Part shown: in pieces, positions 7,572 to 37,872 of the stretch
How positions within the stretch are numbered: position 1 is the first letter of the stretch
How the letters are laid out: each line of letters begins with the position of its first letter
Source of the DNA: Blepharisma stoltei ATCC 30299
Lineage: Eukaryota; Protista; Ciliophora
Assembly (NCBI GenBank): GCA_965603825.1
Contig: CBFDEM010000033.1
Location: forward strand, 372,001 to 436,000
DNA: 64,000 nt
Direction: 5' to 3'
Made by a program: the position numbers and the translations under genes
Notes under the pieces: generated by a model
The model's database searches: none
What the model was told of the DNA's origin: nothing
The model's input: the letters and a program-made list of their open reading frames with translations, nothing else

Positions 7572-7628
7572 GAGGAAATCTAATAATTTAGGTAAATTCC
7601 AAAACTGTGACACTTATTTTATTATTAA

Positions 7629-9032: not shown

Positions 9033-9164
9033 TATAGTTATTGCTAAGTGGTTATTTTAAACGTAGCAAGGAGTATAGCTAAACTAACATTGTCATAGAA
9101 ATTTTAAATAAATTCTTCTGTAGAGAAATTGTTTCGATTTAAATTTAATTTATCTCAAATTATA

Positions 9165-12100
9165 ATGATGCTCTTGAAGTCTCAATCTCCAATGTACCAA
9201 GCCGCAGGCCTAGTGACAACTATAAATAGAATTCGCTATCGATCTCCTTCCCATCGTGCAAAGCTCTCTCCAAAATCTTCATCAAAATCACGAAAAAGAT
9301 GTAGTCCCAAAATCAATCATTCTTTTGCAGCATATGAAGAATCTTCCCCTTCCTCTATAAAACTTCGAAGCACCTCAGTAGATCGAACCCGTCACAACTC
9401 TATAGGAGAAATGAAATCAGTTAGATCAAGACACACGACTCTTAGATCAGTCACAAAAATTTCTGATATTTTAGAAAACCTAGAAGTTCAAATCGAGATA
9501 GGTAGGCAAGCTATCAAGGACGGCAATTTTTCCCAAGCGGTTGAAATTTTTCAAGGTGTTTTGGAAAAAGATAGAGGAAATTTTGATGCTCTCTATGGAA
9601 GGGCTATATCTTATATGCATTTACAAGACCATAAATCAGCTGTTGCTGATTTGTTGATCGTGGCAAAGGAGAACCCTGTTTATGATAGACAGTTATATAC
9701 AGCTTTAAGCATGTGCTTTATCGCTATGAATGATATTTCGACTGCTTTAAGGCTTATATCTAAAGGCTTATCTAAGTTTCCTAGATTTGCAGAAGGGTAC
9801 GTGGTAAGAGGGCAAATATATTTGAAGCAGGAAAAGAATGAGAAAGCTTTATGTGATTTTAAGCAAGCTATCGCATTTAATCCAAAAGATGGATCAGCCT
9901 ATTTAGGAGTAGCTGACTGTTTAAGCTTTGCGGAAAACAAAGAAAGCTGCCTTGAAGCATTAAATAAAGCGATATCTTGCCCAGAGACTTCTATGGCTGC
10001 ACTACTTAAAAGAGCAAAATTTTTTTCTTCATTGGATAAAAATGACCAAGCTCTTGATGATTTGAATAAATATATATCTTATAAATCAGAAGACTCTGAG
10101 GCTTATTTTGATAAGGCTTCGCTATTGCTAAAGACTAATCAGTTCAATGAAGCTGCTTTATGTTTTGAACAAGTAATAAAATATGACCAACAAAGCAATT
10201 ACTCAAATCAAGCTGTTTTTCATTTAGGAGCTCTAAAAATTAGAGAAAGGGATTATTATGGAGCCTTACACACTTTTAAACGAACCAATTGGCAAAAAGA
10301 AATCAAAGACCAAAAGACACTGAGGCACTATGCAGAAGCTGTGATTAATCTTATGAAAAGAAAATACAAAGAAGGGATAGCATATTTCACAAAACTAATA
10401 AAAAGTGGGGATAATGTTATTCAAGAATACTTAGCTAATTGCTATGCATACCGAGCTTATGGCTATTGCGCTCTAAATAAGCATGATAAAGCACTTCAAG
10501 ACTTTAAAAAAGCTTCATTGATATCAACCTTAAATAAGGCTTCATTATATAATCAAAACCTAGCTCATGGGCTATGAGATGCAAAAAAAGGGGATTTTCA
10601 GGCTGCTTTGAAACATTTAAATAAAGCTCATAAGCACTTCCCTAAAAATCCTGACCCATTGATTTACCATGCTGCTATATTGCTGCATTTAGCATATAAA
10701 GCTTCTCCTCATAATGATTTATACATAATTGAGGCTGAAGAGCTATTGGAGAAAGCATTTAAACTGCGAGACCCAGAAAGTGACATTTATTACTACAAAT
10801 CTATAATAAAATATTTGGGAAATAAATTGTCTACTGCTTTAGAAGATGCAAAACTTGCAATTGACAAAGCAGAAGAAAATGTTCCAGAGCATTATGTTCT
10901 TCGGGGATTAATCCAAGCTGCGCTTCATAGTTATGAAGAAGCTTTACAAGATTTTACCATTGCAATCCAACTGAATGAAGAACTGCATTACGCAAACTCT
11001 TATCGAGCCCGTGTTGCTTATTTATCAGATGATACAGAGCTTGCTTATAGTGATTTTCAAAAGCATATTGTTTCGTGTCCAGATGATAGGGAGGCTCATA
11101 TAAATCTTGGAAATCTTCTTATGTCATCAGGATCTTATGATGATGCTATTAATGCTTTTAATAATGCATTAGTCCTAGACAAAAGCCTTGCGGCAGCATA
11201 TCAAAAGACAAAATGCTATATTTTGCTTAATAAAATTGATGAAGCAATTGATGAATTAAATAAAATTTTGCAGCTAGATCCAAATTCTACTGCTGCATTG
11301 AAGGATAAAGAAATTTCAGTATTCCTGCAAAAAATAATTTCAGAGCCAAAGGATTTTAAGGTCTTTTTGAATGCTATTGAAATGTGCAATAATTGGCTAA
11401 ATGAAGAATTTGGAGAAATTTTTGAAAAGAAAAATATTCACTGAATGAAAGGGATTTTTTTAATGTACACGAAAGAATATGGCTTAGCTTTGGATGAATT
11501 TCAAGAAGCTCTGGAAATTATCCATTCCAAAGAAACTTTATCAATGACTTCTGATGAAGCTCTTGCTGCAGAAGAAGAAAACTGCGAAATTCTTTACAAC
11601 ATTGGCTTATGCCATTTATTTGTAATTTCTATTTAGTACAATAAAGAGCAATCTTTAGTCATTTTCCAAGATTTATCTGAAGTCCTCAACAATAAGCACA
11701 AAGGGCAGATGCTTTTTCTATCAGCATTATCAGAGCTTTCATTAGGAAACAACGAGCCTGCTGAAAAATTGCTGCAAGAAGCTTTCAAGTGCGACCCAGA
11801 AACAATCAGTCCATTTCTCAATGATAAGCCAACTCTTTTATTGCCATTGAATACAAACAATTCATTTTCCTCTAATTTTCCTTTAATTACGTTACCTTTT
11901 TCAAATATACCTCAGCTAGAAGCAAGGCCTGCAATTTCTCTGCCAAGAGTCAGGCTTCCTTCATTTGAATTTCAAATTGAAGAAAAAGTAAAAGAATTCT
12001 TTGATTTTACAAAAATTTTGCCAAAGCCAGAAGCTCCTTGATTAAACAGAGTGAGAGGATCGATACAATTTACTGAAAATATTGTGGAATTTGATATAGA

Positions 12101-12344
12101 CCCATCTGATTCTGATGAAGAAAAAGAAAAAATTGAGGATAAAAGCACAAATGAGATCAGTGATAATTCTGAAAGAAAAGTAAAATCGTTAATTCCTATA
12201 AGACATAAAACCCCAAGCCCTAATAGCATTTCTATAGATATGAAGGATATTGATGAATTTAACTCCGGAAGCCAGAATGGAAATAAAGAAATGGCTCCAA
12301 AGCACATTCTTCAAAAAATCAAAGATGTTTGTAAAGCAGAATAA
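9165..12344 (+). CDS. Large tetratricopeptide-repeat (TPR) protein
   Basis: Many TPR helices; single frame through TGA at 10575, 11442 and 12039 and a 15-nt intron at 11622-11636; first ATG at 9165. Confidence 0.85.
11622..11636 (+). other. 15-nt intron GTAATTTCTATTTAG
   Basis: In-frame TAG; frame continues after removal. Confidence 0.85.
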
Positions 12345-12829
12345 TGTAAATTATTTTATTTAAAATAATTTTAATAATTTATCTAATTTTTTAAAGCATT
12401 AAGTTATTAGTTTCTATCTATTCAGTATAATTTTCATTAAATTGCTCTCTATCTAAAAGTATGTATTTAAAATTCAAACATTCCTTTTAGATAATTGCTT
12501 AAAATAAAAATTAATATCGACTGCTATGGCTATTTTTCTATTTTAGGCTCTTTTTGCAGGAAAAATACTTGAATATGCATGAAATGGGCTTTTGCACTAT
12601 TGCTGGCATTATAGCACCCCTAATTTGAAATATTTAATTTTTATGTAGGATTATCATTTAGTGTATTATCACAAAGACAGTTCAAAATGGTTTGGAATCA
12701 AAAATTATTCTTTGGACATTTATTTGAAACGAAATTTCAAACTAAATCTTTACTTATTAATGATACAGTTTCTGAGGAGTTTATTTATTTACCATGACAA
12801 ATAACAGATTTAAAAATTACAATGAATTT

Positions 12830-14434
12830 TTATATATTAATAATTTCACCCCTGCTTAAACCAAGCAAAGCCTTTTCATAAGTATCCGGCCAATGATCTT
12901 TAAAGAATCGCGAGGCCAATTGAATCCTTTTATACGACCCAGGGTTGATAAATCCTCCCAAAAACCTCAAATTTGAAGGTCTGTTATATACATATCTAAT
13001 TGATTCAGCGTGGTGCTTTTGATCATAAAGCTGATAAACTTTTCCAGCAGGCTGGAGCCAATTTTCATCTAATCCTTCATAAACCCTGTTAATAATTTCC
13101 ATTATTTCGATGCTATCACTAATATTAGAAGTGTGAGCAATTTTTGCAATATCTATTCAGCCTAAATCCTCTTCAGTTTTCAATCTCTTGATAACTTCAT
13201 ACAAATTAGAAATGCTGGTCAACGACAGCTCCGCTACAAAATCATATCCATGAATACAAGTCAAAATTCGATCTTTAAGAACTAAATTTAGAGACTCAGA
13301 AACTACACTTGGGCAGCCATAAGCAAAAGTTTTCGTTGGAATATTTTGAAAATTTTCATCACTCATTCATATTAGCGTTAGTAAGCTTGCAACTCCAGCC
13401 CCTAAGCTGTGGCCTGTAATAACCAAATCATAGTCTCTTAATTTTGCAAGTTCTTCCAAAATGACGGTTTTAATTGAGTCTGACAGATATTGCGCAGAAT
13501 TAAGCATCCCAAAATGTACCAGTCCTTTAATTCTCTCTTTTGTAGCATTATTCACATAAGTGTACTCTATGAACTCAGCTGTTAGATCAGTAAAAATGTC
13601 ATTAAGTGAAAAAGTTCCTCTTATAGTTAAAACAAGTGATTTTTTGCTGTGGTCTTTAGAAATAATATAGGCAGGCTCAAACTTTTCAGTGCCGAATCTG
13701 CATAAAATGATATCTTCATCTTCTATTTTACAGTGGTCTCGAAATACTTCACGATCAGGGAGCGATTTAAAAAAATCCCCAACTTGTCGTTTTAGCAATA
13801 TCCGAACAACCGTCTTCCCATATGCCGCAACTGCATATTTGCTGAAATAAACCATTTCTCCAATTGTTGGTTCTTCATGATTTATCCAATTAATAAATAT
13901 CCCATTAACTCTTCTCATTGCACCTTGCAAAGAAATATAAGTCAGCAGGTATTTAACAAAAGAAATCATTGACATTTCAGGGAATTCACGAGTGTTGTAT
14001 TTAATTAGTTTCGAAATTTCATAAATTGTTTGCATTTTTTCTGAAGAAATTATAGAATCTTGATATAGGCTAACTCCGTTTGAGGAGAAATAATTTTCAA
14101 CTTCCTGCTTTTCTTCGGCCAGAAGACTGTCAAAAGAATTGAGTCTTTCAATGAAAAGTTCGTAACTCCAAGAGATATTTGAATGCATGAATTTTTCGAT
14201 TTTGCTGGAAATAGATTTAATTTCGTTGCTAATCTGTATATGAATTACTGGCTTCGTACACTCAAATGTCACAGAATCTATAAGATTTATGGCGGACTGG
14301 ACAAAGGATCCTGCGTAGTAAACTCCTTTAAACATAGAAAAATGCGCTGCCTTCACTAATGGAAAACCGATTTCATCGACAACGAATGAGCCAGCAGATG
14401 CGATCCTGTGTCTGTTTCTCTTAAAGTCTTCCAT
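12830..14434 (-). CDS. Class 3 lipase (diacylglycerol-lipase-like)
   Basis: IRGTFS, VHFGM, GHSLGAG nucleophile, AYGCP, GYDFV; continuous through TGA at 13367-13369 and 13157-13159; possible stop-free intron 14234-14248. Confidence 0.88.
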
Positions 14435-14587
14435 TTATTTAGACTAATTCTATCTTATATAAAATAAATCTAGACAGTAATTTAATTTGAATATTAATTA
14501 TATTTTTATACATAATCGCCGTTATAATTACAAATATGTGAACAGATTTAATGTATCAATTTTAATAATTGTTACTCTAACTTAAAG

Positions 14588-15961
14588 TTACTCAATAGGT
14601 ATGTTCATTAGCTTATTAACTAGTTCCTTTGAAGTTTGAATGCAGTTTGGCACCCCACTTTTATAAATACTTTGCCCAGAGACATGCAGCCAAGATGGAG
14701 ATTTTTCTTCAATTTCTTGAACGATTTTATAATGTCCCACATTATATTGTGGCAATGCATTTTCACAAAAGCTTGAGACTACAGTTCTTGGGGTTTCTTT
14801 AATTCCTGTTTGCTTTTGAAACTCTTTTATAAACGCCTCCTGCAGTTCTGATGAACATTTATCGGCAGGGCCCATAATCGATAAGCATGGTTTTCGCAGA
14901 GGAAATTGTGAAGAATCATAGAGAACCCCTGATATAAGTGATTTTTGCCTTTTTGGAACTAAGTATCCTATCCCGCTCAAGCCAGGATTTTCTTCATAGC
15001 CTACGTTTATTGTTAGTATTGAGTTATGTGGAATTGTTTTACATAAATCTGAAATTCTGCTATATCCTTTTAATATGCTAGGGATTTGAAAAGAAGGAAT
15101 TGTGGTTATGACATGATCTACCTTATAAATTTCCTTTTTTTCATCCACAACTCTACCTCCTGCCATATCATTTTTTTCAATTGAAGCTACACCTAAAGGC
15201 ACATATTTGAAGTTTGGAAACCTTTGCAAATAATCAAGCAAAGCGTTTATAAAACTGCCTAAGCCATCTTTGAAGTTGAAAGCATTTGACCTCACTCCTA
15301 CAGCCCACCCATAAGCTTTTTCTATCTCAGGATCTTCATGGTGTTTTAGCTTCGGTCTTTTTTGTTCTGGAAAATTCATCTTCAAGAATGGCTCTGTAAA
15401 CGGAGAGCAAGACCTTGCTGAAAGCTTAGACATGTCTCCTGAATAAATTCCGGTCTGAAAAGCATCAAGAAATGTTGATATGAAGTACTCTCTATCCTCA
15501 TCATTCCAAAACTTGTACTTTTTCCTGGCAAAAGCTTCAATGCTTTCATCATCAACTTTTTCATATTTAGGTGACCTTTTAAAAAGTCAAGCACATATCG
15601 TACGTCTATAAAGTGGGTTGCCAAATATTGCAGAAATCTTGTATTTGTTTGATGGAAGTAATTCTATCATTTTATCATCTGCATAAATGCAAGCTTGAGT
15701 TCTTGACGTGCGGCTTAGTGCGACCTGGTCTAGCATTCCTACTCTGTGGATTATTTCAAATACGTCTCTTGCTTGTGGAGATACTCTTATAGACCTTGGG
15801 CCTGTCTCAAATATGAAATTATCTTTTGTCATTGTTTGAATCCATCCGCCTGGCTTTGATTTCTCAAATAATGTTACTTGCAACTCAGGATTAAGCAGAG
15901 TTAAGTAATAACATGTAGAAAGTCCTGATATTCCTGCTCCAACTACAGCAACTCTCTTCAT
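14588..15961 (-). CDS. PPOX: Protoporphyrinogen oxidase (HemY/PPOX)
   Basis: VVGAGISGL FAD motif, GGWI, FETGPRS; after TGA (15587-15589) DESIEAFARK...GIYSGDMSKLS; ALPQYNVGH, GVPNCI. Confidence 0.93.
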
Positions 15962-15985
15962 ATTATTTATTTATTTACTGATTAT

Positions 15986-17368
15986 TTAGTCATCTCCTAA
16001 AAATTCATTGCGGTCTAGCTCGTCTTGTGGAGGCGCCACAACCACTTTTTCAACGATTTTCTCTGGCAGTTTGCTCTTAGGCATTGGCTGCCTCCCTACT
16101 TTTCTAATTTTAGGGTTTGCAGACCTTTCCATGTATTTTTGAAGCTTATCTTGAGTTTTTTTCTTTTCTTTGATTAATGTCTCATTTCTTGATTTCTCTC
16201 TGCGGTTTTTTTCTAAATCAATTGCTTTTTTGGTGACATATTCAGGGTCAATTTGATCAAATTCTTTAAAAATCCTTAAATAAGTATCAAGTCTATACTC
16301 AACCTCAGTTAGCAACCCTAAACAATCTTGTTGACCTTCGTCTGCTTCTAATCCAAGGACATCTCTAGTGGTTTGTTCAAGCCTTACCAAAACTGGATGC
16401 CCAGACAATTCGTTTTCCATAGTTTTTTTCAGCCTTCCATCTAATTGTATACATCTTTTATCCTTTTCTTCAATAGCTTTTCCTAGCTCTGATCTTCCCC
16501 CAGTGAGTTCTGACAGCTTATGCCCAGTTAATTTTTCAATATTTTCAAACTCATGTTTTGCCTGTTCCAAGTTCTGTTCAAGCTCTTGTATATTTTGGAT
16601 CAAAATCAAGTTATTTTCTACATACCCATGAAAAATATCGGTTAGCTGCTCTGAGTTTTGGAAATGGTTACCTGAACCTTCTTCATGCGGCTCTACTTTG
16701 TCGAGGAATTCTTTATACTTTGTATATTCTTCAAGGCTTTCTTCATGTTTTTGTATCTGAGTTTGAAGCTGTTGAATTTCTTCATTGAGATGGTTAATAT
16801 CATGAGTAATATCAATTTTTATTTTATTCAGCTTTTTCGCCTCTTTCATTGCATCATGACTTTGCCGCTTGCATTCATCCCAGTATTCATTGAATCTTGT
16901 AGTATCTTCAATAAGCATATCTTCTGAATTTTTTAGCCCATATTCTCTTAGTAATGCAAATTGTTCAAGCTTCTTAATTTCTTCCTTTTTAATATCAATC
17001 ATCATTTGTAGCAAGAACATTTCTCTTTTCTTTTCAATTGTTTTGTGGATGTTCTCTCGAGCTCTTACACGATCTGCAACTAATGCTGCGTGTGCGGCTT
17101 CTGCAACTGTTACTTTTTCTTCAACAGGAGTTGAACTTATTTCAATTTCTTCTATTTTTCGTAATGCTCCTGCGCGGTTGTATTTGGTTCCTTTCTCTCA
17201 GATTTTTTGTCCTCTAGTTTTTACTCGATCCTCTTTTTCTTTTGCTTTGATTTCGCGAATGTTGAGGATTTCTTCGTCTGGAGGAACTTTGAAAGGATTT
17301 TCATGTCCAGTGTCAAACATACTTGATCTAAGAGGAGGCAAAGAATTCTTGGAATCTAAAGTATCCAT
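15986..17368 (-). CDS. CFAP100: Cilia/flagella-associated coiled-coil protein, CFAP100 (CCDC37/38, DUF4200)-like
   Basis: ATG 17368, NPFKVPPDEEI, KI(TGA 17198-17200)EK, KKREMFLLQMMIDIKKEEIKKL, EDTTRFNEY, ENNLILIQNIQELE, RKVGRQPMPKS. Confidence 0.8.
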
Positions 17369-17829
17369 GGTGCTTTTAACAGATTTAAATTACTCTTAAT
17401 AAGTAAAAATTAAATGTGAATATTTTGATATAGATCAAATGCAGACTCTTATTGCATTATTGCATAAGCATATTTTTAACGTGTCTAAATTTCAGTTCAA
17501 TTATCTGAGAATGTAAACTTATTTTTTGATTAGATCACAAAAATTTTAATAAAAAAATTAAATTATATTAAAGCGAAAAATTCTGAAGGTGCTATTTATA
17601 TTCAAATAACTATGCAAAAAAATTTCTTCATTTAATTTTAAATAATTCTTTCTGATCTCTAAAAACTCGCATATCCATTATAATTTTTCAGTCTAATATC
17701 GCTGATCTAGAATTCTCTCACAAAGGGAGCCTTATTTCATATCTAGCTTAATCTCTATAAGCTTCACTAACTATCCGTTAAGAAAATTGCGCATTGAATT
17801 TATTGTTATGATTATTGATAATTTCGATT

Positions 17830-18864
17830 ATGAAGGGAGTTTTCTGTCCAGTCTTTCACCCCACAAAGGAAGAAATGAAAGATTTCCAAGGGTATATAGA
17901 GAAAGTTGAAGGTTTGTCCGAAGGATTCGGGATGGTAAAAGTAGTGCCTCCTGAAGGCTGGAAAGCCCGAAAAAGAGGATACAAAGATATAAATGTCCAA
18001 TTAACAAACCCAATTCGTCAGCATGTTCGAGGTCTCGCCGGTATATACAGCGTTTATCTCATCTCTGAAAAGTCAATGGACCTAGATTCGTACCGAAACT
18101 ATGCAATTTCTAGAGATCCCAAGCAGAATCTCTCAGACGAAGAAATAGAAATGCTTGTAATTTTTATGCAGTTTTGGAAGCAAATCCGGTATGATTCTCC
18201 TATCTATGGTGCTGATAGCAATGCTGAGACCTTATTTGACTCAGATAGTGAGTGGAATTTGTCACAGCTTGATACAACACTATCGTAATTCATATTCAGA
18301 AAAGGGCTGCATCCTTATAAATTAGCTGGAATTAATATGCCATTTATTTATGCAGGTTGCTGGAAAAGTATGTTTTGCTGGCACAAAGAGGATATGGACC
18401 TTTACTCTATTAATTATCTGCATTTTGGGAAGCCGAAGTTCTGGTACTGTATCCCACTAGAGGAATCTGAAAGATTTGAGCGTTTCTGCCAGTTTCATTT
18501 TCATGATGACTATATAGCATGCCCAGAATTTCTCAGACATAAATCTATACAAATATCACCGTCAATACTGAAAAAAGCTGGAATCAATGTCCAAAAAGTG
18601 GTTCAGCGACCTGGAGAATACGTCGTGATTTTCGCTAAAGCGTATCATATGGGCTTCAACTCAGGATTCAACTGTGCTGAAGCAGTCAACTTTGCAACAC
18701 CAAAATGGCTTGATATTGCTTCAAACGTTTCACGATGCCTATGCGATCCGGATACTGTGAAAATTGATATGGATGAGTTTAAGGCTAAACTAGAAGAATA
18801 TGAAAATAGATCAACAAAGAGAAAATCAGAGCCGAGAAAAAGACAAAAAGTTAGAGCGAATTAG
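17830..18864 (+). CDS. KDM4: JmjN-JmjC histone lysine demethylase, KDM4-like (3 exons)
   Basis: JmjN PVFHPTKEEMKDF...GMVKVVPP; JmjC FCWHKEDMDLYSINYLHFGKPKFWY, AYHMGFNSGFNCAEAVNFA; introns 18157-18171 and 18285-18299. Confidence 0.92.
18157..18171 (+). other. 15-nt stop-free intron GTAATTTTTATGCAG
   Basis: Matches the intron consensus; removal gives EIEMLFWKQI...PIYGAD with KDM4 spacing (ELERKYWKNL...PIYGAD). Confidence 0.78.
18285..18299 (+). other. 15-nt intron GTAATTCATATTCAG
   Basis: In-frame TAA; joins the two KDM4 ORFs. Confidence 0.9.
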
Positions 18865-23979: not shown

Positions 23980-24160
23980 ATTCACAGTTGTAATAGAATG
24001 ATTAGTAAATTTCTCTAATCAGCGATTCTTAATTAAAAACCAATATGGAGAAGTCTATTTTTAGTCTGAAAATATATAATTATGCATTTATTTAAATGAA
24101 ATTCTAAAATATCTTAAAAATATAAAATATTCTAAAGATCATAAACTTTAGTAATTTAAT

Positions 24161-24769
24161 ATGGAAAGTGGTTGGGTCAGTACTTCAAGCACAGTTCTCA
24201 GTAGAGCACTTGAAGAAGTCAAAGATCTTGCAGGAAGAAGTGACTGGGGTGCAAGAGATCCTGAAGGCGGAGTTGAATATTCTGCTCGCCCTCATGATGA
24301 TTACCCTATTGCAAGAGGTATCGGAGAGATTAATGCTCCTTTAGAAACTTGCGTCCAGTATTTCAGAAATCATAATAACAACAGCCAATGAAGTGAGACT
24401 CTAAAATCAATTACAGTTCTTCAAGACACTGGAAACTTAAAGCTGCTCAAATCAATAATAAAAGCAAGATGGCCTATGAGTGATCGAGAACTTCTTTTCG
24501 CTCAACAAGAATTTCCTGAAAATAGTGGGAATACAGTTTATGTCATTGAAAAAAGCGTAGAACTTGCTGAATACCCTCTTCAGAAAGGATATGTGAGAGC
24601 TCACTTGAATTTTAGCGGGTATATTTTTGAAAGGTTGGATTCGAATAGAACAAGAGTGACTTATATAGTACAATTCAATCCGGAAGGGATGGTACCTGGA
24701 TTTGTAAGAGAGAAGATGCAGCTTCGTCATGCAGCCAGAATTGGTATTGCTAAGAAAACATTTGGCTAA
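24161..24769 (+). CDS. START-domain lipid-transfer protein
   Basis: TGA=W at 24389-24391 joins two ORFs; WPMSDRELL, KGYVRA, GYIFE, TRVTYIVQFNPEGMVP. Confidence 0.88.
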
Positions 24770-25512
24770 TTAATTTACAATTAAAGTTATCAGTTTTAAA
24801 TTTAAAATTAACGTTTATTTGTTTTTTTAAGAATATAGAGCAGCTTTAGTATTATTCATAATAAAGAATTAGTAAAGAGGGCTTAAATTGTTTGATGATC
24901 TTTAACCACTAAAACAGTAATTTATTTTAAAATTTAAAGCAATTACTTATATTTTCATATTAATTATCCTTAAAGCGCAGCTTATTTTAATTAAATGCAT
25001 TAAAATTATTATATTGCCGATAATTATTAATTCTAAAATATTGTTACTAAAATTGTTTCTGATATTTAATATTCAGAGTGATTCTAGTAATATAAAAATA
25101 TCAAATAAGATCAGGAATTGAACTCAATTCTTAGAACAAACAATCTTTTTTGGGTTAATTACTGATGCTAGTATAAATTTAACATTGAAATTATGTATTA
25201 AATTTTTTCAAAAATAAACAATTTATAAATAATTGATAGAAAGTAAAGTTTTATAAGTAATAATGAAGATGCTTGCGATTTCATTATAATAAATATCAAG
25301 GTTTCTTAAATATTTTTTACACACTTATGAGGAGGATGATATCTAAGAAATAGTTTTTATTCTAAAAGCTTTTCATACTCATGAAGAAAAATATAAAATT
25401 TATCAAAGCTAGAATAGCAATATATAATTCACCTTGAAAAGAGATAAATATAATTAATTCAAAATTCATTCAATTTGTAGATTTAAACTTAATCAAAATG
25501 AAGTTTTATAAA

Positions 25513-25800
25513 ATGTCGTTGTTCTTATATGATGAGTCTCGATTTGGACCTGCAGGAATAATAACTGATGGAGGCGGATTTCCAGTCTCTTCACTTGGAA
25601 AAAGCTTTACAAGGCTTAGTAGAATCAGTGGCCAAGCTCCACCAAGAAATACCCTCTGTCTATTATCAGAAAATGTCTCTAATATCTGGCTTCCAGGCTG
25701 GGATTTAATGTGTAGAAGTGTCAGAAATAATATTAACTTGGGAGGAGGTGTTTCTTGCATCAATTTAATGATTGGATTTGATCCTAGTACCTTAAGTTAA
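25513..25800 (+). CDS. Small hypothetical protein (~95 aa; alternative ATG at 25498)
   Basis: GC-richer open frame with AAAATG context and TAA stop inside a long AT-rich spacer; no recognisable domain. Confidence 0.5.
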   Translation: MSLFLYDESRFGPAGIITDGGGFPVSSLGKSFTRLSRISGQAPPRNTLCLLSENVSNIWLPGWDLMCRSVRNNINLGGGVSCINLMIGFDPSTLS

Positions 25801-26862
25801 ACAATCTTTCTATAAATGTTAAATTATATAGCTTTTTATGCGCTTTTTAATTTACACAAAACAGCTCTCGAATAATGATTAACCTTCTGTTTTTGATTAG
25901 AGAAAGGGACTTAACGTGCCGAATAAGTAGGGATAACCAATAAAAATGCACAAAAAAAGAATTTGGCACACAAAATAATTCTAAATGGCTAGAAAACAAA
26001 ACTGTGAAAAATGTTAAATCAAAAAATCTTAATAAGCCCAAAATATTCCCAATAAAATTTAATTTGATATGCCTAAATTTACGTGTCAACAACTTTTGGC
26101 TTTCTACATATTTTTCACGATCTATTAGGAATATAAAATTTTGTCATACCATTCTTTCTTGCAAAATTTTTTCATAAGCCTGAAAGTTTATTTTGTTAGA
26201 GTTCTGCAGGTTTTTGCGTATATCTAGTAAACTATATGTGTTTTCCTGCGTTAAATTGATAATTTAGGCAATTATGGGTGTTGTTTTCAGACTCTGCTAA
26301 TTGTATATTTTTTATAGTTAAAAACAGCTAACTATTAATTTACTTACTTTGCTTAATCATCTATCATTATTTAGTCCTCTGAGTTTTCAATTAGAAATCC
26401 ATTGTTCAACTAAGCCTGTATAAAGGCTAGTCTCACAATTAATTAAATAGTAAATATAGTTCTTATGTACTTGTTTATGAAATATTAGCGCAGCAATGCT
26501 TGAAAACTCTTTTAAAATTTAAGCTTTATACTAACTACTTCATGCATTAAATCCTTACTCTTCTCAAATCTTTGAAGTATTGATTAAGGAAGTGATTGCT
26601 AGTTCCTTTAGCATGAAAACCTTATCAAAGATGAAACTATGCTACTTAATTTTATTTGGAAAGTATTTTGCGTCGCTATTTACATATACTTAATAGCTTA
26701 ATTCTATTTTAGAGTATGAATTAACTGCGATCGTTAATTATTTATTTACGCGGTATATCCATTGAAAAAGATAGACTAATTTTTCTCATCCATTTTATTC
26801 AAATTCCCTTTTAAATCTAATTTATCTCCAGTCACGAAAATTAGATTAAATAGAAACTTCAC

Positions 26863-28398
26863 ATGGTGAATTCGCTTTTAAGCACCCTTTCTGTATTACA
26901 AGTATCAATTTCAAAAAATGACTACAATCATTCTTCCCTTATGTCCCTTATCGAGAATGCTGCAACTGAAGCAATCCCAGAAAACCCTTCAAAAGTTGCA
27001 GTAGACTTGTCATTTCTTGAAGAAATAGCAAACTTAGTCAGCAAGCTGTCCTCTGAAGATTTAATCCTCCATGATTACTTGGCAGTAATTGAAAGTGGCA
27101 TCCATAAATTTGTTCGATATTGGAAAGGTGTATCAGACTTGCAAAACGACTTGGTTTCAATTAAAGAAATTCTTGTCAGAAACTCAAAAACAATCAATTC
27201 TCAGATGAAAAGGGTTGCAAGGATCCTCAAAGACTATAGAGACCGATGCAGGGTTTCCTTTTTGGAATATCTAAAATTCCTTGATTTAGAACTTCGAAGA
27301 ATTCTAAAGCCTTTAGTTCCCACAAGTACTGTAGTAGAGCAGGTCAAATTTCCACTCATAAATGATAATGCAAGTTTAAGAAGTTCTGTCGCTGTGTCTC
27401 AGCCAGAATCTGCAAGGGAATCTATACCCCATCAGAGCCCAAGGGAAGATTTAGAAACTTTGAATACCCAAAATACATCTGAACATACAATAGAGAAGCT
27501 AAATAATCATGTACATATGCTAGTCAGTACATTAGAAAGGGTAGCAAAAGATCTTATACAAGTTGTAGCAGAGTCTGATAGACAATATTATGAGCTTTTA
27601 AATAAAATTGAAGTCTACTCGAGGCCGCCTACTCCATTAGCTGCACCTTTGCCCGAATATTTTTGTTTCGATACAGAGGATTCTAATCAGAACTTAAGGC
27701 CAGAAAAACAAATTTTTCCGAAGAAAACCAAGGCAAAATGAAGGGAAAGGCTAAAATTGCTATATAAAAATAAAGAAATTGATGAAAATGTATATACAAA
27801 GCTGCTTAAAAAAATTAATTTATTTGATGATAATGATGCAAAAGTAGATTTAGAAGAACTATTCAAAGACACTGATCTTTCTATGGATGTCAGAGAAGAT
27901 GCAGCGTTTTGCTTAGTAAATACTTCCAAAATACCTCAGCAAGATGTATCAATTGCTGATCTCATGCTAATAGAAGAAGATGCAAGAAGGTCTATTAGCA
28001 ATGAAAGGATACCAGAAAATTTAAAACCAGAACCACCAAAAGAGCCAAAACCAAAAAATAGACCTGCTCATAAACTAGAAAAGCAAATTACAGAAGTGAA
28101 ACAAAAGCCAACAAATCCAGTGTTTAGTGAACTCTCGCCGCATAGAGCAGAGAAACCATCGCCTGTGTCTAAAGCAAGCCAAATTAGAAGATCTGTGCCT
28201 GCTACTAAGCCTTATTCGAAATTTATTGCTCAAAAGCAGCACGAGAGTTCGTTTAGTAGTGATAGGAAAGATGTGAGAGTGAGATCCATTACACCAGTAG
28301 ATAAGCCTAAGTTTAGGTTTGGAAGAAAAAGAAGAACGAAGACTCCTTCGGGTTCTATCCCATATTCACATTTGAATAGCTTCAGCGCTATACACTAA
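26863..28398 (+). CDS. Hypothetical helical/coiled-coil protein with S/P/K-rich C-terminus
   Basis: Two ORFs joined in frame by TGA at 27739-27741; TAA stop. Confidence 0.75.
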
Positions 28399-28928
28399 TG
28401 TTTTTATACTTTTGCTGAAATTAAACATAAAATAAAATCATAAATAAATAAGATCATATTCTAAACATTAGGTAGTGGACTTTGAGTATTTGTATAGTAT
28501 ATTAGCTATAAAGCATTAAAATTGTGTATTTTCTTAATGAGACTCATCTAAATCAATTACAGGGCCTAAGATATCAAATTAAGCTTAATAATTGAAGCTA
28601 TTTTGCTTTCAATAGAATTTTTTTGCCATTTTTGCTTTCTGCAAATTTTTGCATTAATGAATAAAAATAATCATGCCGGAATCCATAGAATATGAACAAC
28701 CTCATAAGTAAAGCCAACTTTTTCTTAATTTAAAGCAATAGACTTTGATTACTTTCATCGAAACAAAAATGCTAAATTGCTTTTATTGACGTAAGCAATT
28801 GAAAATTAAATCTAAGCCTTGATGCCCTTGCATTGCACAGTCAAAATCAAAAGTAATCAAAGCTTAATTGATTGAAATGATTCATTATATCTGTATCTAT
28901 ATTGACTGAATAATTAAAAATCAAAAAA

Positions 28929-29768
28929 ATGAAACCTGAAGAAATTCTCCCTGAACTCTTACTGAATAACACAACATATAAAATTTCAGCAGGAAGAAGG
29001 GCTAAAGCCGATGCCATTATACGAGCACAATTTACATGCAGGAGAGGCTGTCCAAAAAAGGAATATTTAAGATGCAAGCTAATTAGAGGACACAAAAGAC
29101 TTATGAGACAAATTAAGAAAAATATTAAGCCAGAAAAAACACTGAATAAATTTGATTCAAATAATCAAGTTGGTAGAGAAAACTGAAATCTACTGGTTCA
29201 ATGCAGCATTGAATCTAGAGCCGAAATCGAAGCATGAAGCAAAACTGAAGCGGGACCACTGACTGACGGGAAAAGCAAAAGAAAAGACAATGCTGATGAT
29301 ACCTGCAAGTCTTTTAACATGAAATTCTGTCAGTGATATTTCAGTCCTCTCCCAATCAGAAAATCTTATTATTACTACACAGAATTATTATTCGCAGAGT
29401 TTAGTCCAGAAATTCTAAATGATAAGTTTGAGTTTAATTGCTGCAATGAAGATCAGCACAGTTTGGAATGCTATCAAAAATGAGCACATATGAAAAAGTA
29501 TATTAATACGTTTTTGATTGAAGATCTGGAGCTCGAACCGTGGTTTCCTGACCGCCAGGTTGTGCCAAGGCTTCCAAATATTTTAGAGGGAAATATGTTT
29601 GAATTAATATACAATCAAATTAAATCGCTTTCAAAGCAAGAGAATTCTGATACTGCAATTTCTGATGAAGCTAAAACCATTTTTACACAAGATATATCAA
29701 CTGTTGAAGAAGTCAAGCAAGCTTCTTCTGAGGGATCTGCTTTTAAGCATTATAAAGCGATAATATAG
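28929..29768 (+). CDS. Hypothetical protein with basic helix and CC-x4-H-x3-C motif
   Basis: One frame through TGA at 29184, 29235, 29334 and 29481; KKEYLRCKLIRGHKR, KSFNMKFC, CCNEDQHSLEC; TAG stop. Confidence 0.78.
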
Positions 29769-30828
29769 TTACTATTATAAATTATTGAATAATTTTCAAA
29801 ACTATTCATTTAGGTATTTGCAAAGCTCGTGTTGGTTTTACATGAAATATTTGTTTGATAAATTTTATTATATATAATAAGTGCCCCAAATTCATCAAAA
29901 ATAGTACAAATACAGATGAATTTTTTCAAAAGTATTTTTAATCATTTTATACATTACATAGATAATAATTTGTTGTAACTTTAAAGAATTTATTATAAAA
30001 ATGAATTAAATTTAATCTTTATTTATACAATTAATTGGATTTTATACATTAAGACCTTTTTTTTAATAGAGTGTTGAATTTAGTCTATGATTTAGGATAT
30101 TTTATAATATTAATTATTGATTATATTTGGCATACTTTTAAATTGAATACTTTTCTTAATTCTGTAGGCTGAATTCTTGATTAATTATTACGAGGCAATT
30201 TTGCAACACTTTGGTTTATTGTTTTAGCAGAAATAAAATGATAAATTTTTGACTATCAGCATAAAACAGACATTAAAATAGGCTGAAAAAAATTATACTG
30301 CAAAAATAATCGAATTCCACTTGCTCTACATAAAACAAAAATTAGCGATTCCTCGAGCAAAAGTGGTGCCAGAAAAAATAAAGAATAAAGCCTGCAAAGA
30401 AAAAATTAGGCAAGCAAAGATAGGCCAAACAAAATAGATGAAAAATGTTTTTGTGAAGTAGAAATTGTGTGAATTGAATGTCAATAAGCCTTATAATAAT
30501 TGAAATCGTGCTTGATGTTTTAGTGTGTTTTGATTCCGTTTTCATTTGAAGTCTGCCTAGAGTAATTGCATAATATCCAGTAGTTTTTTATTTAAATTTA
30601 TAAGATTCTATTAATTTTTCATTTAAAACGCATAAAAATGCATTTAAGGTTCTTAAGGAATAGTCAATCTTATAGCTAAATTGATTAATATGATTAAAAT
30701 AAACTAAATAAATCAAACGACACAAATGATCATCGTGCTTCATTTAAAGCGTAAATTAAAAAGAATCATATTATCAGTATGGCACTAATTAGTAATTCGA
30801 TTATATGTTTATTATTGATATTAAGTTA

Positions 30829-33800
30829 TTAATCCATTTTCTCCTTTATGGAGCTTGTTCCTGTCATTGATTTAACTTGCTCTGTAGAGCGAAGAATATC
30901 TATTAACTCATAATAAAGCTCTTCCTCTTTTATTAATTGCCCTCTCATACGGCACACATAAATTCCTGAGCATAAAGTAATTAAAGGCACTGGATTTTTC
31001 ATATCAGTCATATAAATATTTTGTGAACCCCCTGTTACAAAGTATCTTAGGAATCTAGCTATAAGATAAACAATAGAGATATAAAATGCCCATAGCGAGA
31101 AGCCGAAAGTGACTGGACTATAACTATCAGAAATAACATAAAAAACAGGTCCTTTAGGTCTTCGCTGACCTGTTAATATTCCTACTTCCCAATATGATGA
31201 ATTTCTCTCATCTTTGTGAATTTTCATGTATAAATTTGGTGAGAATTTTTCATCAATTACTGTATAAGGAGTTATTGTTGCTCCTGCGCTTGGAAGCTTT
31301 ACGAAACTACCGTAGAAATGGGTTTTAGAGTAAATCATATCATATTTTCCTTCACAGATCATCTGATAGAACGTATTTGTGGAATTGCCCAAAGGAATAA
31401 ATAAAGTCTCAGAAACTCCTGGCTGAGTTGTTGGATAAGTTCTTCAAAATGTATAAACCATTAGCAGCTTCGATTCTTGATAGTTTGCAGTATTATTCAA
31501 TGTATAACATAGTCTATCTCTACTAGGTGGAGTAATTCCCCAATATGTTTCTTGAAATCTCGGCAACGAAATAACCTGCAGGTGTGGCTTATCACTAGAT
31601 TGGATATCTTTGACCTCATTCATGTTTTTAGCATTTCATTCTTCATCTGTGATAAAATGCATTTCATCATGGGATTTTGTGTCATATAAGGAATAGCTTC
31701 TGCTTTGACAAATAATTTTTATTTTCATATCCATTCATTTCACATCATTTTTTTCCATTATAGGATTTAAAGAACTAAAAATAATTAGTGGAATCAGTAT
31801 CACGAAGCATATTAAAAACAGTGTAAAAAATCCCATATAACCTTTTTGCCATGCTGAAATATTTTCTCCTTTTTTATGATAACTGTAAGATAATTGTATG
31901 CATCTTGTCTGATATAGTCTCGCATTTATATCTTCAAATTTAAACCACTGGAACAAATCAAGAGCAGTTGGTGTAAACGTTCAGTCTAAAAGTGTTCTTA
32001 GCTCATATAAAAATGGTAATGCTAAATATGCTTTGAATAGCCTATAAGAAGTCATTGACGTGCTTCTCATAAAAGGAAATGATACTTTTCTAAAGGAAGG
32101 AAGCCCATGTCTGATCTGTAGTGACATAATAACAAAGTATATTGCAAAAAGAATGTAAAACCATTCAATATAAACATTTATTTGGAAGTCATTGCAATCT
32201 CTGTTATCAAATGATGTGCAATAAGGTTTGCCTGAAAGACTGCGATTTCCATCAATTGGGAAATACCAAAACACTAAAGCGTGGATAGCTGCCATAATCA
32301 AGATATTGGAAAGGAGTCTAACTATCATAGCTTTATTCCATCTTTTTTCAGAGCTCTTTTCAAGATGAGGAGCCTCATAATTAAATTCAATTAAGATTTG
32401 ATTTAAAATATTGTAAATAGCATGGTCGCCTTTCCAATCCCCATTGATAAATTCTGGGATAATGCTTTTTTCATAGTTATCAATAATTTTATGATGAATA
32501 TTCTTCTTGCAGATCATTTTTGGGGGGTATTTAGGGTACTGAAATGGGAAAATTATTGTAGCCTCAATTTTTTTGTCTTTTGAATTTTCTATAGCTTCTA
32601 CATTAAATACGACTTTCCATTGAACTATTTCGTGATCTCCTTCAACCCAAGTTACTTTGATATTTTTGCAATTTTCAGCTTCTGTAAATTGCCTGTGAAT
32701 AAGTTCCTTGTCAAACTCAATTTTTTCAGTAGAAGCTGCTGGTAAGAAAGTCATTTTTTTCGTGCTTGCTCTTCTTTGGCCCCTTTTAGCATTTAATAAA
32801 GTGTCTTTTCTTTCCAATGATGCCACTTGGTCATCTTTCAACGCTTGTGATGTTTTTCTTACATACAAATACCTTTCGATTAATATTAAAAAGAACTGAA
32901 GCATCAAAGCAATTACCATTCTTCCTTGAAACTGGTTAGCTTTTATTGACTGAGAAATATCATGTGAATAGCCTTCCATTCTTGTAAAGCAAATAAAAAT
33001 GTAAACCAAAATAATAAGTTGTATCAAAATTAGAGGAAGATATAAATCTTTGCCTGGCTTCTCTTCTTTGTTTTTAGGAATTATCCTAGATATTAATTTA
33101 ACGAATTTGCCAAAGAAAGAGCCAGAATCTATCTGATAGGGGTAATGAGATTTTAATTCCAAACTTTCATCAGCGCTGCTTACTTGTTTGATATATCGAA
33201 CCTTGGCCTGCTCAAAAGACTCAATTTCATACTCCACACGATTGTGCAGTCCTACTCTTCTCAGATAATAAGTATGGAATAAAATTGTAACGATAAGCAA
33301 GGCATCATAGAAAATATACCAGAAGAATGCTCCGCTATATGTGTTTTGGGCTAAATTAAATCCTATTTTTGCTGGATCATGATAATTTATGGGAAACACA
33401 TCATTGGTTAAATATGGCCACAAGTCAAGCTGGAAGCAAAATTTAACAAAAACGACAGTGCTTATATAATATAATAATAGCCAAAAATAGTTAGATGGGG
33501 GTCTTGGGTTCTCGAACATAGCATATCCTACAATAGATATTGGTAAAATAACTGATTCTAAGCTTGCGTATATAAAATTGTTAAGAAAGCACATAAAAAA
33601 CACAATATTTTGTGTGTTGCTGGCTGGAATATAAAGTAAAAGCAGCTTAATATAATCACTTAGCGTCAAATTATATACTTCTACAGCAGAAGATTCATCT
33701 TCTAAATTAAGCTCATTATCTTCTTTTGATTGCTTGTTGCTGACAGAAGCTCTTCTAAAAATTTTTTGGGGCTGAGAACCTAAATCTTCAAGTTCAATAT

Positions 33801-36800
33801 TAATATTCTGAATTTTGGAGTTTCTTTCAATTATAGTTGAAATAAACTTTCTAAACATCGCAGTATCTACCATGCTTATAAGAATTCTATCAAAAATATT
33901 TTTAATTTTCTTCATTTGGCCTTCTTTTTCAATTTCATAAGATTCATTTTCTGATTTTTGGTATGTAAAAGTTATTGGCGCATTTTTTCTAATTAAATTA
34001 AGCTGAGTTTCTAATCTTTCAAGCTTCTCTACAAATATGGCTCTTCTTTGCTCATATTTTATGTTTTTCTCAATTAGCCCATCATTAAATAGCCTAGCCT
34101 TTTCAATTCCTATTCCAATTGATTCACGAAGGATTTCCTTTGTTAGAGAGTCAAAATATACCAGAAATTCTTGGCTGTTGATCATTCGGTATATAACATA
34201 CATTAGTGTAAAAATAAGAATTTTCATATCTATTTCAAGCTGTGAACTTGAATAGTCTTCTGAGTTTTCTTCGTCAGTTCCTGCACTCCACAGTCTTTTC
34301 ACTCCAATTACTTTAAACAGACTACTATCCTTATAGCTATCAAACACTTTAAATGGGATTTGGAAAACAAATTGAATAATAAGATCCAATAAAGTGTATA
34401 TAAGAAGATGTGATAACAACCTTGTGTAGGATCCTAGATTTGATTTTACTAGAGTCGTTTCTTTGATAATCAATAATAAAGAAAAAATGATATAAACCAA
34501 ACTGATAAGTCCAAAACTGTTAGTCAAAAATAGTAGAACAAGAAACAGCAGTAACAGTCTTGAAAATCTTAAAGTATTTTTCTTCAGGGTATCCATAAAG
34601 ATTTTCAATTTTTCGGTTTCTTTTTCTTCATTCTTTGCTTCTGCAAACTCACCTTTTTCTTTTTCTAATTTTTTAAGTTTGTCTCTTTCATTTGAAAGTA
34701 CAATAAAATGGAATAGACATAGCAATAATATTATTTCGTCATATAGCAAGGAATGGAGCTGAGAAATTTCAGTCCCTAAACTTAGAAAATAAGCATCATC
34801 TTTTGTAGGCCAATCAATGCGAGCATACCAAGGATTTTCGAATGGATCTCTAGCAGGCGACTTTTGTGGTGAATTTTTTCCATTAATGTTGCTCAAAATC
34901 AATGAATACTGCAAGATAACCATAATTGCGACGACTATACAAATGATCACCTTTTGATTTCTTTTATTAGCTAAAGGTACAAATAAAGCTGTAAGGAGAT
35001 AGACAAAGCCAATAACAGTGAGTTTTTGGAAAGCTGTAAATAAGAGTATCATAGGTATTATAGCCTCTGAAATAGTCCTTAGCCAAGTTAAAATTCTAAC
35101 CACAATCACATTTACCTTTTTGCTTATTTTTACTTTATCACTTTTCAATAGCCCAGTCAAATATGTGGCATCATAATTCGGCTTTAAATACTCCAAACAG
35201 TGCCTTTCAATTATCAGCATTATGCAAATTACTACATACCCATAATTATCAAAAATACTCCATTTCTTTGATGCGCTAAATCCTGAAAAATAAAATATTC
35301 ATTCAGTGTATTCGTATGATTGTGATTCATATAATGGCTGCATCATGATATCAGTATATGAAAAAATCAGTGCTAATATTGTGATTGTAAATAGGACTTT
35401 TCACATATTAAGTCTATAATTTCACTCCTTTCGGTAGCCTGTTTTATTTTTAGAATTAAGGTATATGGAAATAGCAATGAAATAGATAATGATTACAATC
35501 AAATAGAGAAGCATAGAGAATGATAATTTTCAGTAGCATGATAAATAGAAAATCGTAAATAAAAGAGCAAAATTGAAGCACTCACAAAAAGCTCTGAATT
35601 GATAGGTTTTAATTAACTCAGAAATTGTCATTTTTGAAGATTCTTGTTGTCTGATTATTAAGTGATAGGTGTATTTTGATGAAATAAAGAGACAAGAGTC
35701 AAGCAGAAGTGTGGAATATAAATCTTTTCGGCTGTAAATGCTGAATCCAATTAATGATATATCTAAGGTTGGGAAAGGCAGGTATGGCCAGAATTGGTAA
35801 AAATATTCTCCTATTAAAATTACTGCGCTCAGGCACATGAAGATATAAGTAATTACCCATAATGCTGTGTAGTCATACCACATGAAATTTTCTTTGGTTT
35901 CTTGCCCTTGAAGTGGACTGTTTGTAACGCTAGCATTTGTTATAGTTTTTACTGTAAACTTATTTGTAAGTAAACCCAGCAAAGGATTGTTAATAGATTC
36001 AGGCTGATTTTCTTCTTCTTTATTTTCTTCTTTATCTCCAGCTTCATGATCTTCTTGATCAGCATTTCTATTATCTGGTTTTTTAATTGGTTTTCTCAGT
36101 AATATAAGTAAAACTCCTGCTAAAATGAACCTTCCAAAGTTTATTAAATTTTCTGCTGAAAATAAAATAAAAGTAAAAATAAGAAGGATACTGAGCCATA
36201 TTTCACCTCTCTTAATTCAATGAATAGCTTTATATAAAATCTTTTTTCATGCTTTTATCAGTTTTCTATCTTCTTGTTCTTCCTCGATTTTTAGAGATTC
36301 ACTGTGCAGCTGATGGCTGGCTTTGTTTACTCATAACTGAATTCCAGATAAAATGACAACTGTCCATAATATAACTTCGTTCAGATAAATAACTTTTTCG
36401 TTATCATCTAATGAAATGCCAAGCGAGCCAATTTTATAGTTATCGAGCAGCAAAAACGATGCCAATGAAGGAAATACATTAAAAATTTTAGAGATAAGAA
36501 GAGCTGCCATAGAATATAGCACTAACCATTTCCAGTATTTTTCAATAAGTGGTGGAACAATAAGGAAAATAAAATAAAATATAATAATAATTCCGAGAAT
36601 ATAGTTAATTTCAGAGAGCGCTGCTGACATTATTCCAAATAAAGAAATTCAATGCCAATAGGAAAACAAAGTTCTTAACTTCCTGGTATATTTTTCTTCA
36701 GTTTTTACATAAGGAAGCCTTACTAAAATTAAGAACCATATTGTTGTCACAAATAAATAAGAAATAGCTGCTAAATCTTTGTATGAGTGAGCGTCGTTAT

Positions 36801-37872
36801 AAAGCTTAATGCCATATGAAATTCCAAACCCTACAGATTGAAGTGGTATTACTATAAATCGATAGATGAACAGTGTTTTTCTTTTAGAAGTCGATATTAT
36901 AGTGTAAAATAATGGAATCATAAGAAAAATACTTAAAATATTTCTGAAATAAATGACCCATACGATTAGCATTAATCTTGCCAATGTATGAAATAGCAGC
37001 TCTTTTGGGCTATTATTCAAGAAATATTTCAAGCTTGGCTTATCAAAGCTTTCTTGCAAAGATGGCTCAGTCTCATATTCTTTTGAAATCAAAGGGATTT
37101 GCATATCACTTGTTGTTTCTCCAAAATGCTTTTCCTGTTTATAAGCAATCGAAAAAAACGTAAAAATTAAATGCACTAAAAATGCCATCAAAAACATACC
37201 AAGAATATTTAAGTCGTTTAAGATAAATCCATATATCCAGAATGATTTACTCAAAGACGGATCTTCAAAAATTAATGCCAATATGTAAGATGTAACTATT
37301 TGAACTGTAGCAGCAATTGAAATAAATCTAAAAATTAACAAATTTAATTTCATAGATTTATATCTTAGATTTGCAGCATATACCAAAGATGTCAAAGAAT
37401 AAATAAAATTCGCTCAGGTAACATAACTGGAAGCATAAATTGCTAAAATAAAAAGCCCGATTCACATAATTTCTATCCTAAACTTAAAATATTGCTTGTG
37501 CTTTAGCTTTCGTTTTCCTATCAGTGAAAGAACCAAACAAATTATTGCAATTATATCAAATGCAAAATTTTTAAAATAGAAGACAAATGAATTACCTTCA
37601 TTAAAGAAAAGCCCTTGCATTATTGTAGAATCTGGGCTGAAGCCAAAAATCATTAGAGCAGAATAGTTAAGCATCAGTAAAACAGTGATCTTTGCGGCCA
37701 AACTTATAAGCCCAAAAATTAATGCCGCTCGCAATAGAGATTCGGGGATTTGTTTAGCAAATAAAGTCGCGAATCATATAAGCGTGCCAGAGAATACATA
37801 CACAGCTGAAAAAAAGCTCGGATAAAATGCTCCACAGAGTAGCAATATTGAGCTCGATAATCTTTGAAGCAT
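30829..37872 (-). CDS. PIEZO: Piezo-family mechanosensitive channel (~2350 aa) with inserted UBC/UEV-like domain
   Basis: Seven track ORFs in one frame joined by about 15 TGA; many TM helices; Piezo signatures YASLES...PISIVGYAMFENPRP, PGKDLY, QIRHG, PFLYELRTLLD(TGA)TFTPTALDLFQWFKFEDI, LITLCSGIYVCR, EEELYYELIDILRS. Confidence 0.93.

Follow-up and report, generated by a model that had tools for sequence, protein, structure and literature searches.

A pseudo-E2 domain of the UBC superfold in a loop of a ciliate Piezo channel paralog

In the genome of the ciliate Blepharisma stoltei ATCC 30299 we have identified a Piezo channel paralog whose chain carries, in a loop predicted to lie beside the pore module, a folded domain related to the ubiquitin-conjugating enzymes (E2s). 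The gene occupies positions 30829-37872 on the minus strand of the window, i.e., the whole 64,000-nucleotide stretch analyzed here (contig CBFDEM010000033.1, positions 372,001 to 436,000; assembly GCA_965603825.1). Its product is interrupted by an insert of 173 residues (residues 1674-1846; window 32335-32853), and the core of this insert (residues 1721-1840; 32353-32712, minus strand) is a pseudo-E2 of the UBC superfold, with the anatomy of UEV and RWD domains and a sequence nearest to that of true E2s. We refer to this paralog and its ortholog from another sequencing project as A-type. The protein represents an apparently undescribed domain architecture of a known channel family, so far seen in two ciliates. 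Full-text literature searches turned up neither a description of a Piezo bearing an E2, UEV or RWD domain nor any work on Blepharisma Piezos, in agreement with the first-pass annotation of this DNA, which knew of no such architecture. To our knowledge, Piezo channels have been studied almost entirely in animals.

By every feature that could be checked in its sequence, the window gene is a Piezo, and it is complete. An open reading frame scan and translation give a single open frame of 2347 codons without frame breaks, running from 37872 down to 30829 and terminated by TAA TAA, when UGA is read as tryptophan as the first-pass annotation had advised; the peptide strings quoted there all lie in this one minus-strand frame. 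Within it TGA occurs 15 times in frame, once for the invariant Trp of PF(X2)E(X6)W, which has been named as the Piezo anchor motif (PMC12124754) and is located here at residues 1953-1964 (31981-32016, minus strand); the reading of TGA as Trp is thereby supported. Because of the in-frame TGA codons, length-limited tools were run separately on the stop-free pieces. In Pfam these pieces match THU_Piezo1 (1.6e-21), Piezo_THU9_anchor twice (1.7e-23 and 1.8e-17) and Piezo_cap (E 3e-36, 126 bits), the last corresponding to the C-terminal part of the extracellular cap, the inner helix and the C-terminal domain (30835-31443, minus strand). With animal Piezo1 and Piezo2 (mouse Piezo1, PDB 5z10/6b3r) the protein thus has in common the cap, the THU9-anchor region with its motif, the outer helix (residues 2013-2040, between anchor and cap by hydropathy) and the overall build of a long many-helix protein. 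The array of four-helix units is represented by one THU_Piezo1 match in 2347 residues, and the hydropathy analysis covers the last unit only.

It is in this last helical unit before the anchor that the insert is found, between the second and the third hydrophobic helix. Hydropathy places the four helices of the unit, all on the minus strand, at residues 1610-1632 (equivalent of transmembrane helix TM33; 32977-33045), 1651-1672 (TM34 equivalent, with the C-terminal ERYLYVRK; 32857-32922), 1848-1874 (TM35 equivalent, immediately after the domain; 32251-32331) and 1898-1921 (TM36 equivalent, also supported by alignments; 32110-32181). The first two are further assigned by alignment to mouse Piezo1: the upstream flank, starting with the TM33 equivalent at about residue 1974 of the mouse protein, aligns to residues 1974-2043, of which 2043 is the end of TM34, and ERYLYVRK aligns with DRALYLRK of animal Piezo1. 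In solved animal Piezos, about 40 residues lie between LYLRK and the start of the TM36 equivalent, and the animal TM34-TM35 turn is therefore a few residues long, whereas the same distance here is 232 residues, of which 173 belong to the insert. The first-pass annotation had reported some 170 extra residues at 32335-32852 in what is normally a short loop of the final helical unit preceding the anchor; place and size hold, and only the in-frame end, 32853, lies one nucleotide further.

Homology and helix parity together predict that the insert loop is cytoplasmic, since a backward count that starts at the extracellular cap leads through the outer helix to the anchor on the inside, through TM36 to a Cys-pair loop on the outside, and through TM35 to the insert, again on the inside. 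Exactly two hydrophobic helices separate the insert from the anchor and one separates the anchor from the cap, and the 30-residue loop preceding the TM36 equivalent contains two conserved Cys, as fits an extracellular loop. The same count speaks against an extracellular placing of the insert, which the first-pass annotation had named as a possible objection. A trimer would carry three insert modules, placed near the anchor on the cytoplasmic side of its innermost blade units. The insert opens with a linker or stalk (residues 1674-1720; 32713-32853, minus strand), delimited by paralog alignment, hhalign and AlphaFold2 (AF2), and its first 6 to 13 residues (TSQALK...) are common to paralogs (the first 13 with B-type loops by hhalign; see below). 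The AF2 model of the insert has a helix at positions 2-24. The model in context (403 residues from TM33 to the anchor, 14-row alignment) has one at positions 87-142, with a predicted local distance difference test (pLDDT) score of 68-84 at positions 101-140, that is, a confident helical prolongation of TM34 through the first ~30 insert residues. Judged from these models, the start of the stalk probably prolongs TM34 as a helix, and the remainder, modeled with low confidence, is probably disordered.

The identity of the core is supported by profiles, features and structure comparison. Pfam UQ_con matches the isolated insert with 29.9 bits (E 4.9e-7; curated cut-off 27) and the 132-residue core with 30.9 bits, over profile positions 12-105 of 140. 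RWD (PF05773) is the second-best family with 18.6-19.3 bits, below its cut-off of 22.8, and UEV (PF05743) is not matched by this protein with E limits of 1 to 10. As the thresholds of both latter families are not reached, we file the domain under neither of them, as a UBC-superfold pseudo-E2; the Pfam check proposed in the first-pass annotation is thus borne out for UQ_con and not for RWD or UEV. The best phmmer match in the PDB is UBE2L3 (E 0.002), and a profile of the two orthologs against the PDB retrieves UBE2L3 (2.5e-4) and the UEV-like domain of VPS37A (0.0018). In a feature search of the ESM Atlas, UQ_con accounts for 24 of the 30 nearest clusters, with a best score of 0.93. The AF2 model, built on an alignment of the two orthologs only, has a mean pLDDT of 62, with 72-79 over most of the core and 59-65 across the segment equivalent to the active site, and presents a helix (49-60), four strands (65-70, 76-84, 95-103, 112-115) and two helices (122-136, 145-167) in this order.

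When this model was compared exhaustively with 48,161 PDB representatives by VIA-align, the best 50 matches were all E2, UEV or RWD domains (Z 10.0-7.0, 87-129 residues aligned). They include the RWD domains of GCN2 (Z 9.2), RNF25 (9.1), listerin (8.8), Knl1 (8.4) and RWDD1 (8.2), the SEA complex chain 8adl_C (8.8), which is RWD by our own reading, and, among UEVs and E2s, VPS37A (9.1), Ubc9 (8.9), Mms2 (8.6), the Tsg101 UEV (8.0) and Vps23 (7.6). The Z values of the three classes are tied within about one unit, and the fold therefore does not separate RWD, UEV and E2. The domain shares with RWD domains, at Z 8.2-9.2, the succession of helix, four strands and two helices and a YPxxPP-type turn, yet its RWD score stays under the cut-off and below that of UQ_con. 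This turn, common to E2, UEV and RWD, reads YPKYPP here (residues 1779-1784; 32521-32538, minus strand) and YPQNPP in the ortholog. With UEVs such as Mms2/Uev1a, Tsg101/Vps23 and VPS37A it shares a UBC fold that lacks both the catalytic Cys and the two C-terminal E2 helices, but the Pfam UEV profile is touched by the ortholog only, at E 0.0086 and below the cut-off. All UEVs known to us are soluble, either as whole proteins or as N-terminal domains within soluble complexes, and none is an ion-channel loop. With the canonical E2 UBE2L3/UbcH7, finally, it shares the core that begins with helix 1 and ends with the crossover helix (profile positions 12-105 of 140), the FPxxYPxxPPK strand-turn and the conserved Trp that precedes the crossover helix. 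An E2 is thus either the ancestor of the domain or the fold on which it closely converges. The claim that it follows UBE2D motif by motif stands for the UBC fold, on which Pfam, ESM, AF2 and VIA-align agree, and not for the degree of likeness, which is weak and far from UBE2D-level identity.

What separates the domain from canonical E2s is a set of losses. In the phmmer alignment to UBE2L3, the HPN triad is replaced by HKI (residues 1794-1796; 32485-32493, minus strand), and HNI is found in the ortholog; the catalytic Cys is replaced by Ile1804 (codon ATT; 32461-32463, minus strand; EKSIIP vs. GQVCLP), again Ile in the ortholog. The E3-contacting Phe63 of UBE2L3 has become Lys here and Gln in the ortholog. 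The chain reaches TM35 only ~10 residues past the equivalent of the crossover helix, in line with the end of the UQ_con match at position 105 of 140, and E2 helices 3 and 4 are therefore absent. Without the catalytic Cys, the HPN triad and the two C-terminal helices, canonical carriage of ubiquitin as a thioester is, on the evidence of the sequence, impossible for this domain. The truncation after the crossover helix moves it closer to UEV/RWD than to UBE2D. The replacement of HPN and of the catalytic Cys had been noticed in the first-pass annotation, and its assignment to a UEV/RWD-like pseudo-E2 class agrees with the missing Cys, the missing C-terminal helices and the UBC-superfold matches.

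The distribution of the domain was followed within the genome (41.46 Mb, 64 contigs) and beyond. A genome search found no second copy of the insert; the other matches are free-standing E2 genes with E values of at least 2.8e-4. The best of these, a Ubc12/UBE2M-like gene, is 25% identical to the insert (E 2.8e-4), too weak to be named as the donor E2. Five further Piezo paralogs bring the genome to six Piezo genes. At the insert site, four of the five have a loop of ~23-33 residues. The closest one, on contig C10, with flanks 60-64% identical, has a Ser/Asp/Glu-rich loop of 91 residues in which the genome search gave no UQ_con-like match; we call this paralog and its counterpart described below B-type. 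The core is likewise missing from four Piezos of other origin, whose loops measure ~10-85 residues; this survey covered full-length proteins up to 1934 residues, and Stentor and other ciliates were covered by the insert-based search of 1.84 billion proteins only. The large protein libraries yielded a sole true match, the 73-residue P0002 (E 7.8e-11), which was also the only hit of a word-indexed search with the C-terminal half of the insert. It is located between two Piezo_THU9_anchor fragments on an 86-kb contig (L023) of another sequencing project. Read with TGA as Trp, this contig contains two tandem Piezo genes, L023A (4718-11740) and L023B (11771-18412). L023A is 49% identical overall to the window gene, has three upstream neighbors in common with it and carries an insert of 174 residues at the matching site. 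Between the insert cores, identity is 32% and similarity 56%, their alignment containing a single one-residue gap, and the flanking helices are 66-76% identical (66% over residues 1847-1964). The stop-free piece of L023A alone matches UQ_con (E 3.9e-4) and, with 16.4 bits against a cut-off of 27, UEV (E 0.0086). In L023B the loop is 91 residues long, as in C10. In the survey of paralogs and of other ciliates suggested in the first-pass annotation, the five paralogs and the four outside Piezos lack the domain, and L023A has it.

A maximum-likelihood tree of 864 columns outside the loop joins the window gene with L023A (100/99) and C10 with L023B (100/99), and both pairs together (100/100). The A/B duplication is therefore older than the split of the two organisms, and the pseudo-E2 was already dead and in the A lineage by that time. 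The domain has been kept at matching length and with matching losses since the split from a relative whose ortholog is 49% identical. The B-type proteins are the sister clade, expanded at the matching site and alike in the first 6-13 residues, but their 91-residue loops show no detectable similarity to the UBC-like core. To see whether these loops are decayed copies of the domain, they were compared with the A-type inserts by hhalign, which finds agreement in the first 13 residues only, so that the domain may equally have been gained in A or lost in B; the B-type loops can be partly aligned with each other, with a gap of 8-10 residues. The A-type genes evolve faster than the B-type ones (terminal branches 0.47 and 0.33 vs. 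0.24 and 0.18; ortholog identity 49% vs. 61%).

The insert is present in independent sequence data. Four public runs of one study contain the region, and their contigs stop at the ends of two convergent genes, leaving 29788-30181 uncovered in all four runs. As the contigs cover genes and skip intergenic DNA, the runs behave like transcript assemblies; their RNA label is a guess, and their RNA nature is inferred from this coverage pattern. Three contigs span the whole insert and both junctions without joint or indel (X1, 30986-33876; X2, 30896-33816; X3, 31822-33138). The read check across the junctions proposed in the first-pass annotation accordingly yields colinear contigs from three of the four runs. 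Variants among the four runs inside the gene are synonymous in 25 of 27 cases, including the sole one within the insert. We conclude that the gene is a probably expressed Piezo paralog and that the insert is genuine. For an assembly chimera, an unexcised germline element or an unspliced intron we found no support, the guessed RNA label being the sole weak point, and such an origin is extremely improbable: the frame stays open across both junctions, the GC content of the insert (0.326) matches that of the rest of the gene (0.311), contigs from several runs pass through it unbroken, and an independent assembly of another organism has the insert at the matching site with kept synteny. Moreover, introns of this genome are ~15 nt long, against 519 nt for the insert. 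A 15-nt, in-frame, stop-containing interruption is indeed observed in the TM33-TM34 loop of the paralogs L019-L022 (contigs C20, C20, C1 and C5), at a place where the A and B types show a 5-residue alignment gap; most simply, it would be an intron that one paralog clade has and the other lacks.

In this study, we propose that the TM34-TM35 hairpin of the innermost helical unit has been expanded to 173 residues, made up of a ~45-residue stalk and a ~120-residue UBC-superfold domain. Every subunit of the trimer would expose a single module of this kind to the cytoplasm, close to the anchor and the pore module. The module, non-catalytic and built into the channel, would work as a docking site, an auxiliary subunit in cis that recruits a cytosolic partner, and docking would give the A-type paralog its own control of turnover, trafficking or gating. 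We regard an A-type Piezo with a UBC-superfold loop domain as non-catalytic docking module as probable. Known pseudo-E2 modules (UEV, RWD) are docking domains for partners, which makes a built-in non-catalytic binding site the most economical reading. Because the domain is nearest to E2s, a partner from the ubiquitin system (ubiquitin or a ubiquitin-like protein (UBL), an active E2, or an E3) is tentatively put forward as the likeliest single class, and a partner bound in the manner of RWD domains, without ubiquitin link, is nearly as likely. The bolder version, in which the pseudo-E2 is a working receptor of the ubiquitin system at the cytoplasmic pore mouth, binding ubiquitin or a UBL or pairing with an active E2 or E3, we hold to be rather doubtful. 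If true, it would couple mechanical gating to ubiquitin-dependent turnover or signaling in one polypeptide and provide a natural 'auxiliary subunit in cis' for a Piezo. A complex prediction of the 132-residue core with the ubiquitin of this genome (L027:1495-1722) scored 0.01 against a mark of 0.34, and weighs neither way.

Auxiliary subunits and cytosolic regulators of Piezos are known from the MDFIC family and from SERCA2, which acts on the linker between anchor and outer helix. The likeness to these is one of function only, a module set against the inner blade or pore that tunes the channel; they are separate proteins of unrelated folds, whereas the module described here is part of the channel chain itself.

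Several observations weigh against the docking module as proposed. The likeness of the insert to E2s is beyond chance, yet weak: with the insert as query, 1.84 billion representative proteins yielded no canonical E2 at E 0.001, and Foldseek against the PDB, which the first-pass annotation had recommended along with AlphaFold, gave nothing at E <= 0.001 (best 5e-3), although the top 50 are nearly all RWD or E2. The confidence of the insert model is middling (mean pLDDT 62), and in the 403-residue model (mean pLDDT 55.8, predicted template modeling score 0.33) the domain is not convincingly folded. The core evolves far faster than its flanks, so that constraint is mainly on the fold. The lost Phe63 argues against binding of canonical RING or HECT E3s, and the expression data carry the guessed label already mentioned.

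A different function could be served by the same fold. As an RWD-type scaffold without ubiquitin link, the module may bind a cortical or cytoskeletal partner or itself, and for instance tether or cluster channels in the cortex. Many RWD domains are dimerization or docking modules outside ubiquitin chemistry, the order of helix, four strands and two helices corresponds to the RWD topology, RWD is the second-best Pfam family, GCN2, RNF25, listerin, 8adl_C, Knl1 and RWDD1 stand among the top structural matches, and the canonical E3-contact Phe is gone. The sequence, however, is nearer to E2 (UQ_con above its cut-off, RWD below), the ESM features favor UQ_con, and the structural scores are tied; we therefore see in it a possible alternative, of minority weight. 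The insert might also be a mere passenger, an inactive E2-derived sequence that was accepted by a permissive loop and has since remained as a folded spacer with no role of its own. The loop length indeed varies in ciliate Piezos (10-91 residues), few parts of the gene evolve as fast as the insert (32% vs. 49% overall and 66-76% in the flanks), and it is seen in two organisms only. Such indifference is disfavored by the strict conservation of length, 173 vs. 174 residues, with one single-residue gap in the 120 core positions as compared to 112 gap columns gene-wide. In addition, the fold-defining motifs are retained in both species, the sole variant within the insert is silent, and the B-type sister loops, which align in part together, have nothing in common with the core; we consider the passenger unlikely. 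Still less can be said for an active E2 of non-canonical type using Cys1788 (MICKK; IICKQ in the ortholog), a very improbable reading. This one Cys of strand 4 is conserved in both orthologs, but it lies 16 residues before the catalytic position and within a sheet strand, HPN and the C-terminal helices are missing, and we know of no E2 that uses the equivalent position. A non-catalytic docking module therefore remains our preferred reading of the A-type insert.

Some further observations concern the stalk, the locus and the searches. The stalk contains RRAS (residues 1700-1703; window 32764-32775), a basic-Ser motif of the PKA consensus type; KSRS is found at the corresponding site of the B-type loops (C10, L023B), and L023A has none. 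Speculatively, the loop may be phosphorylated at RRAS. Downstream of the window Piezo lie three genes (plus strand; 24155-24766, 26854-28395 and 28914-29765, block 24155-29765) that are paralogous to the three that follow the B-type Piezo on C10 (484609-488570), with 54-73% identity and with order and strand kept, and the two Piezo loci therefore lie in a duplicated block. The A and B genes are tandem neighbors in L023, unlike the separate loci here. The history may have begun with a tandem pair that was duplicated as a block and then underwent reciprocal loss, or it may have been another; no remnant of a B-type gene was found in the ~1-kb spacer downstream of the window Piezo. In this spacer between the convergent genes (29766-30828) no open reading frame was found. 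Low-depth short contigs occur at ~30263-30580 in three of the four runs, and contig X4 has a loose end at 30515; these may stem from a small unannotated transcript. Among the five hits of the 1.84-billion-protein search, P0001, P0003 and P0004 were rejected as relatives, being tandem-repeat proteins in which many weak stretches are summed: the unit 'PPSYPRELFPPP' recurs in P0001, and P0003 and P0004 belong to the chemoreceptors with HAMP repeats. P0005, with 13 stretches in 4546 residues, shows the same hit pattern and was set aside with them. That tandem-repeat proteins reached E values down to 2e-30 against the 173-residue query is a warning about whole-protein E-values.

In summary, a folded module of enzyme origin has been retained at the TM34-TM35 site of a natural Piezo since two ciliate lineages diverged. 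In animals, separate regulators make contact with the cytoplasmic face close to the pore. With two carriers known, the A-type Piezo is a well-supported curiosity and not yet a mechanism. It is a further case of the evolution of E2s to pseudoenzymes, here within a membrane protein. It also indicates that the TM34-TM35 site tolerates, and may exploit, a globular domain, which offers an engineering handle for tags, sensors or grafts in animal Piezos. Finally, it provides a concrete, testable hypothesis by which mechanosensation would be linked to the ubiquitin system.

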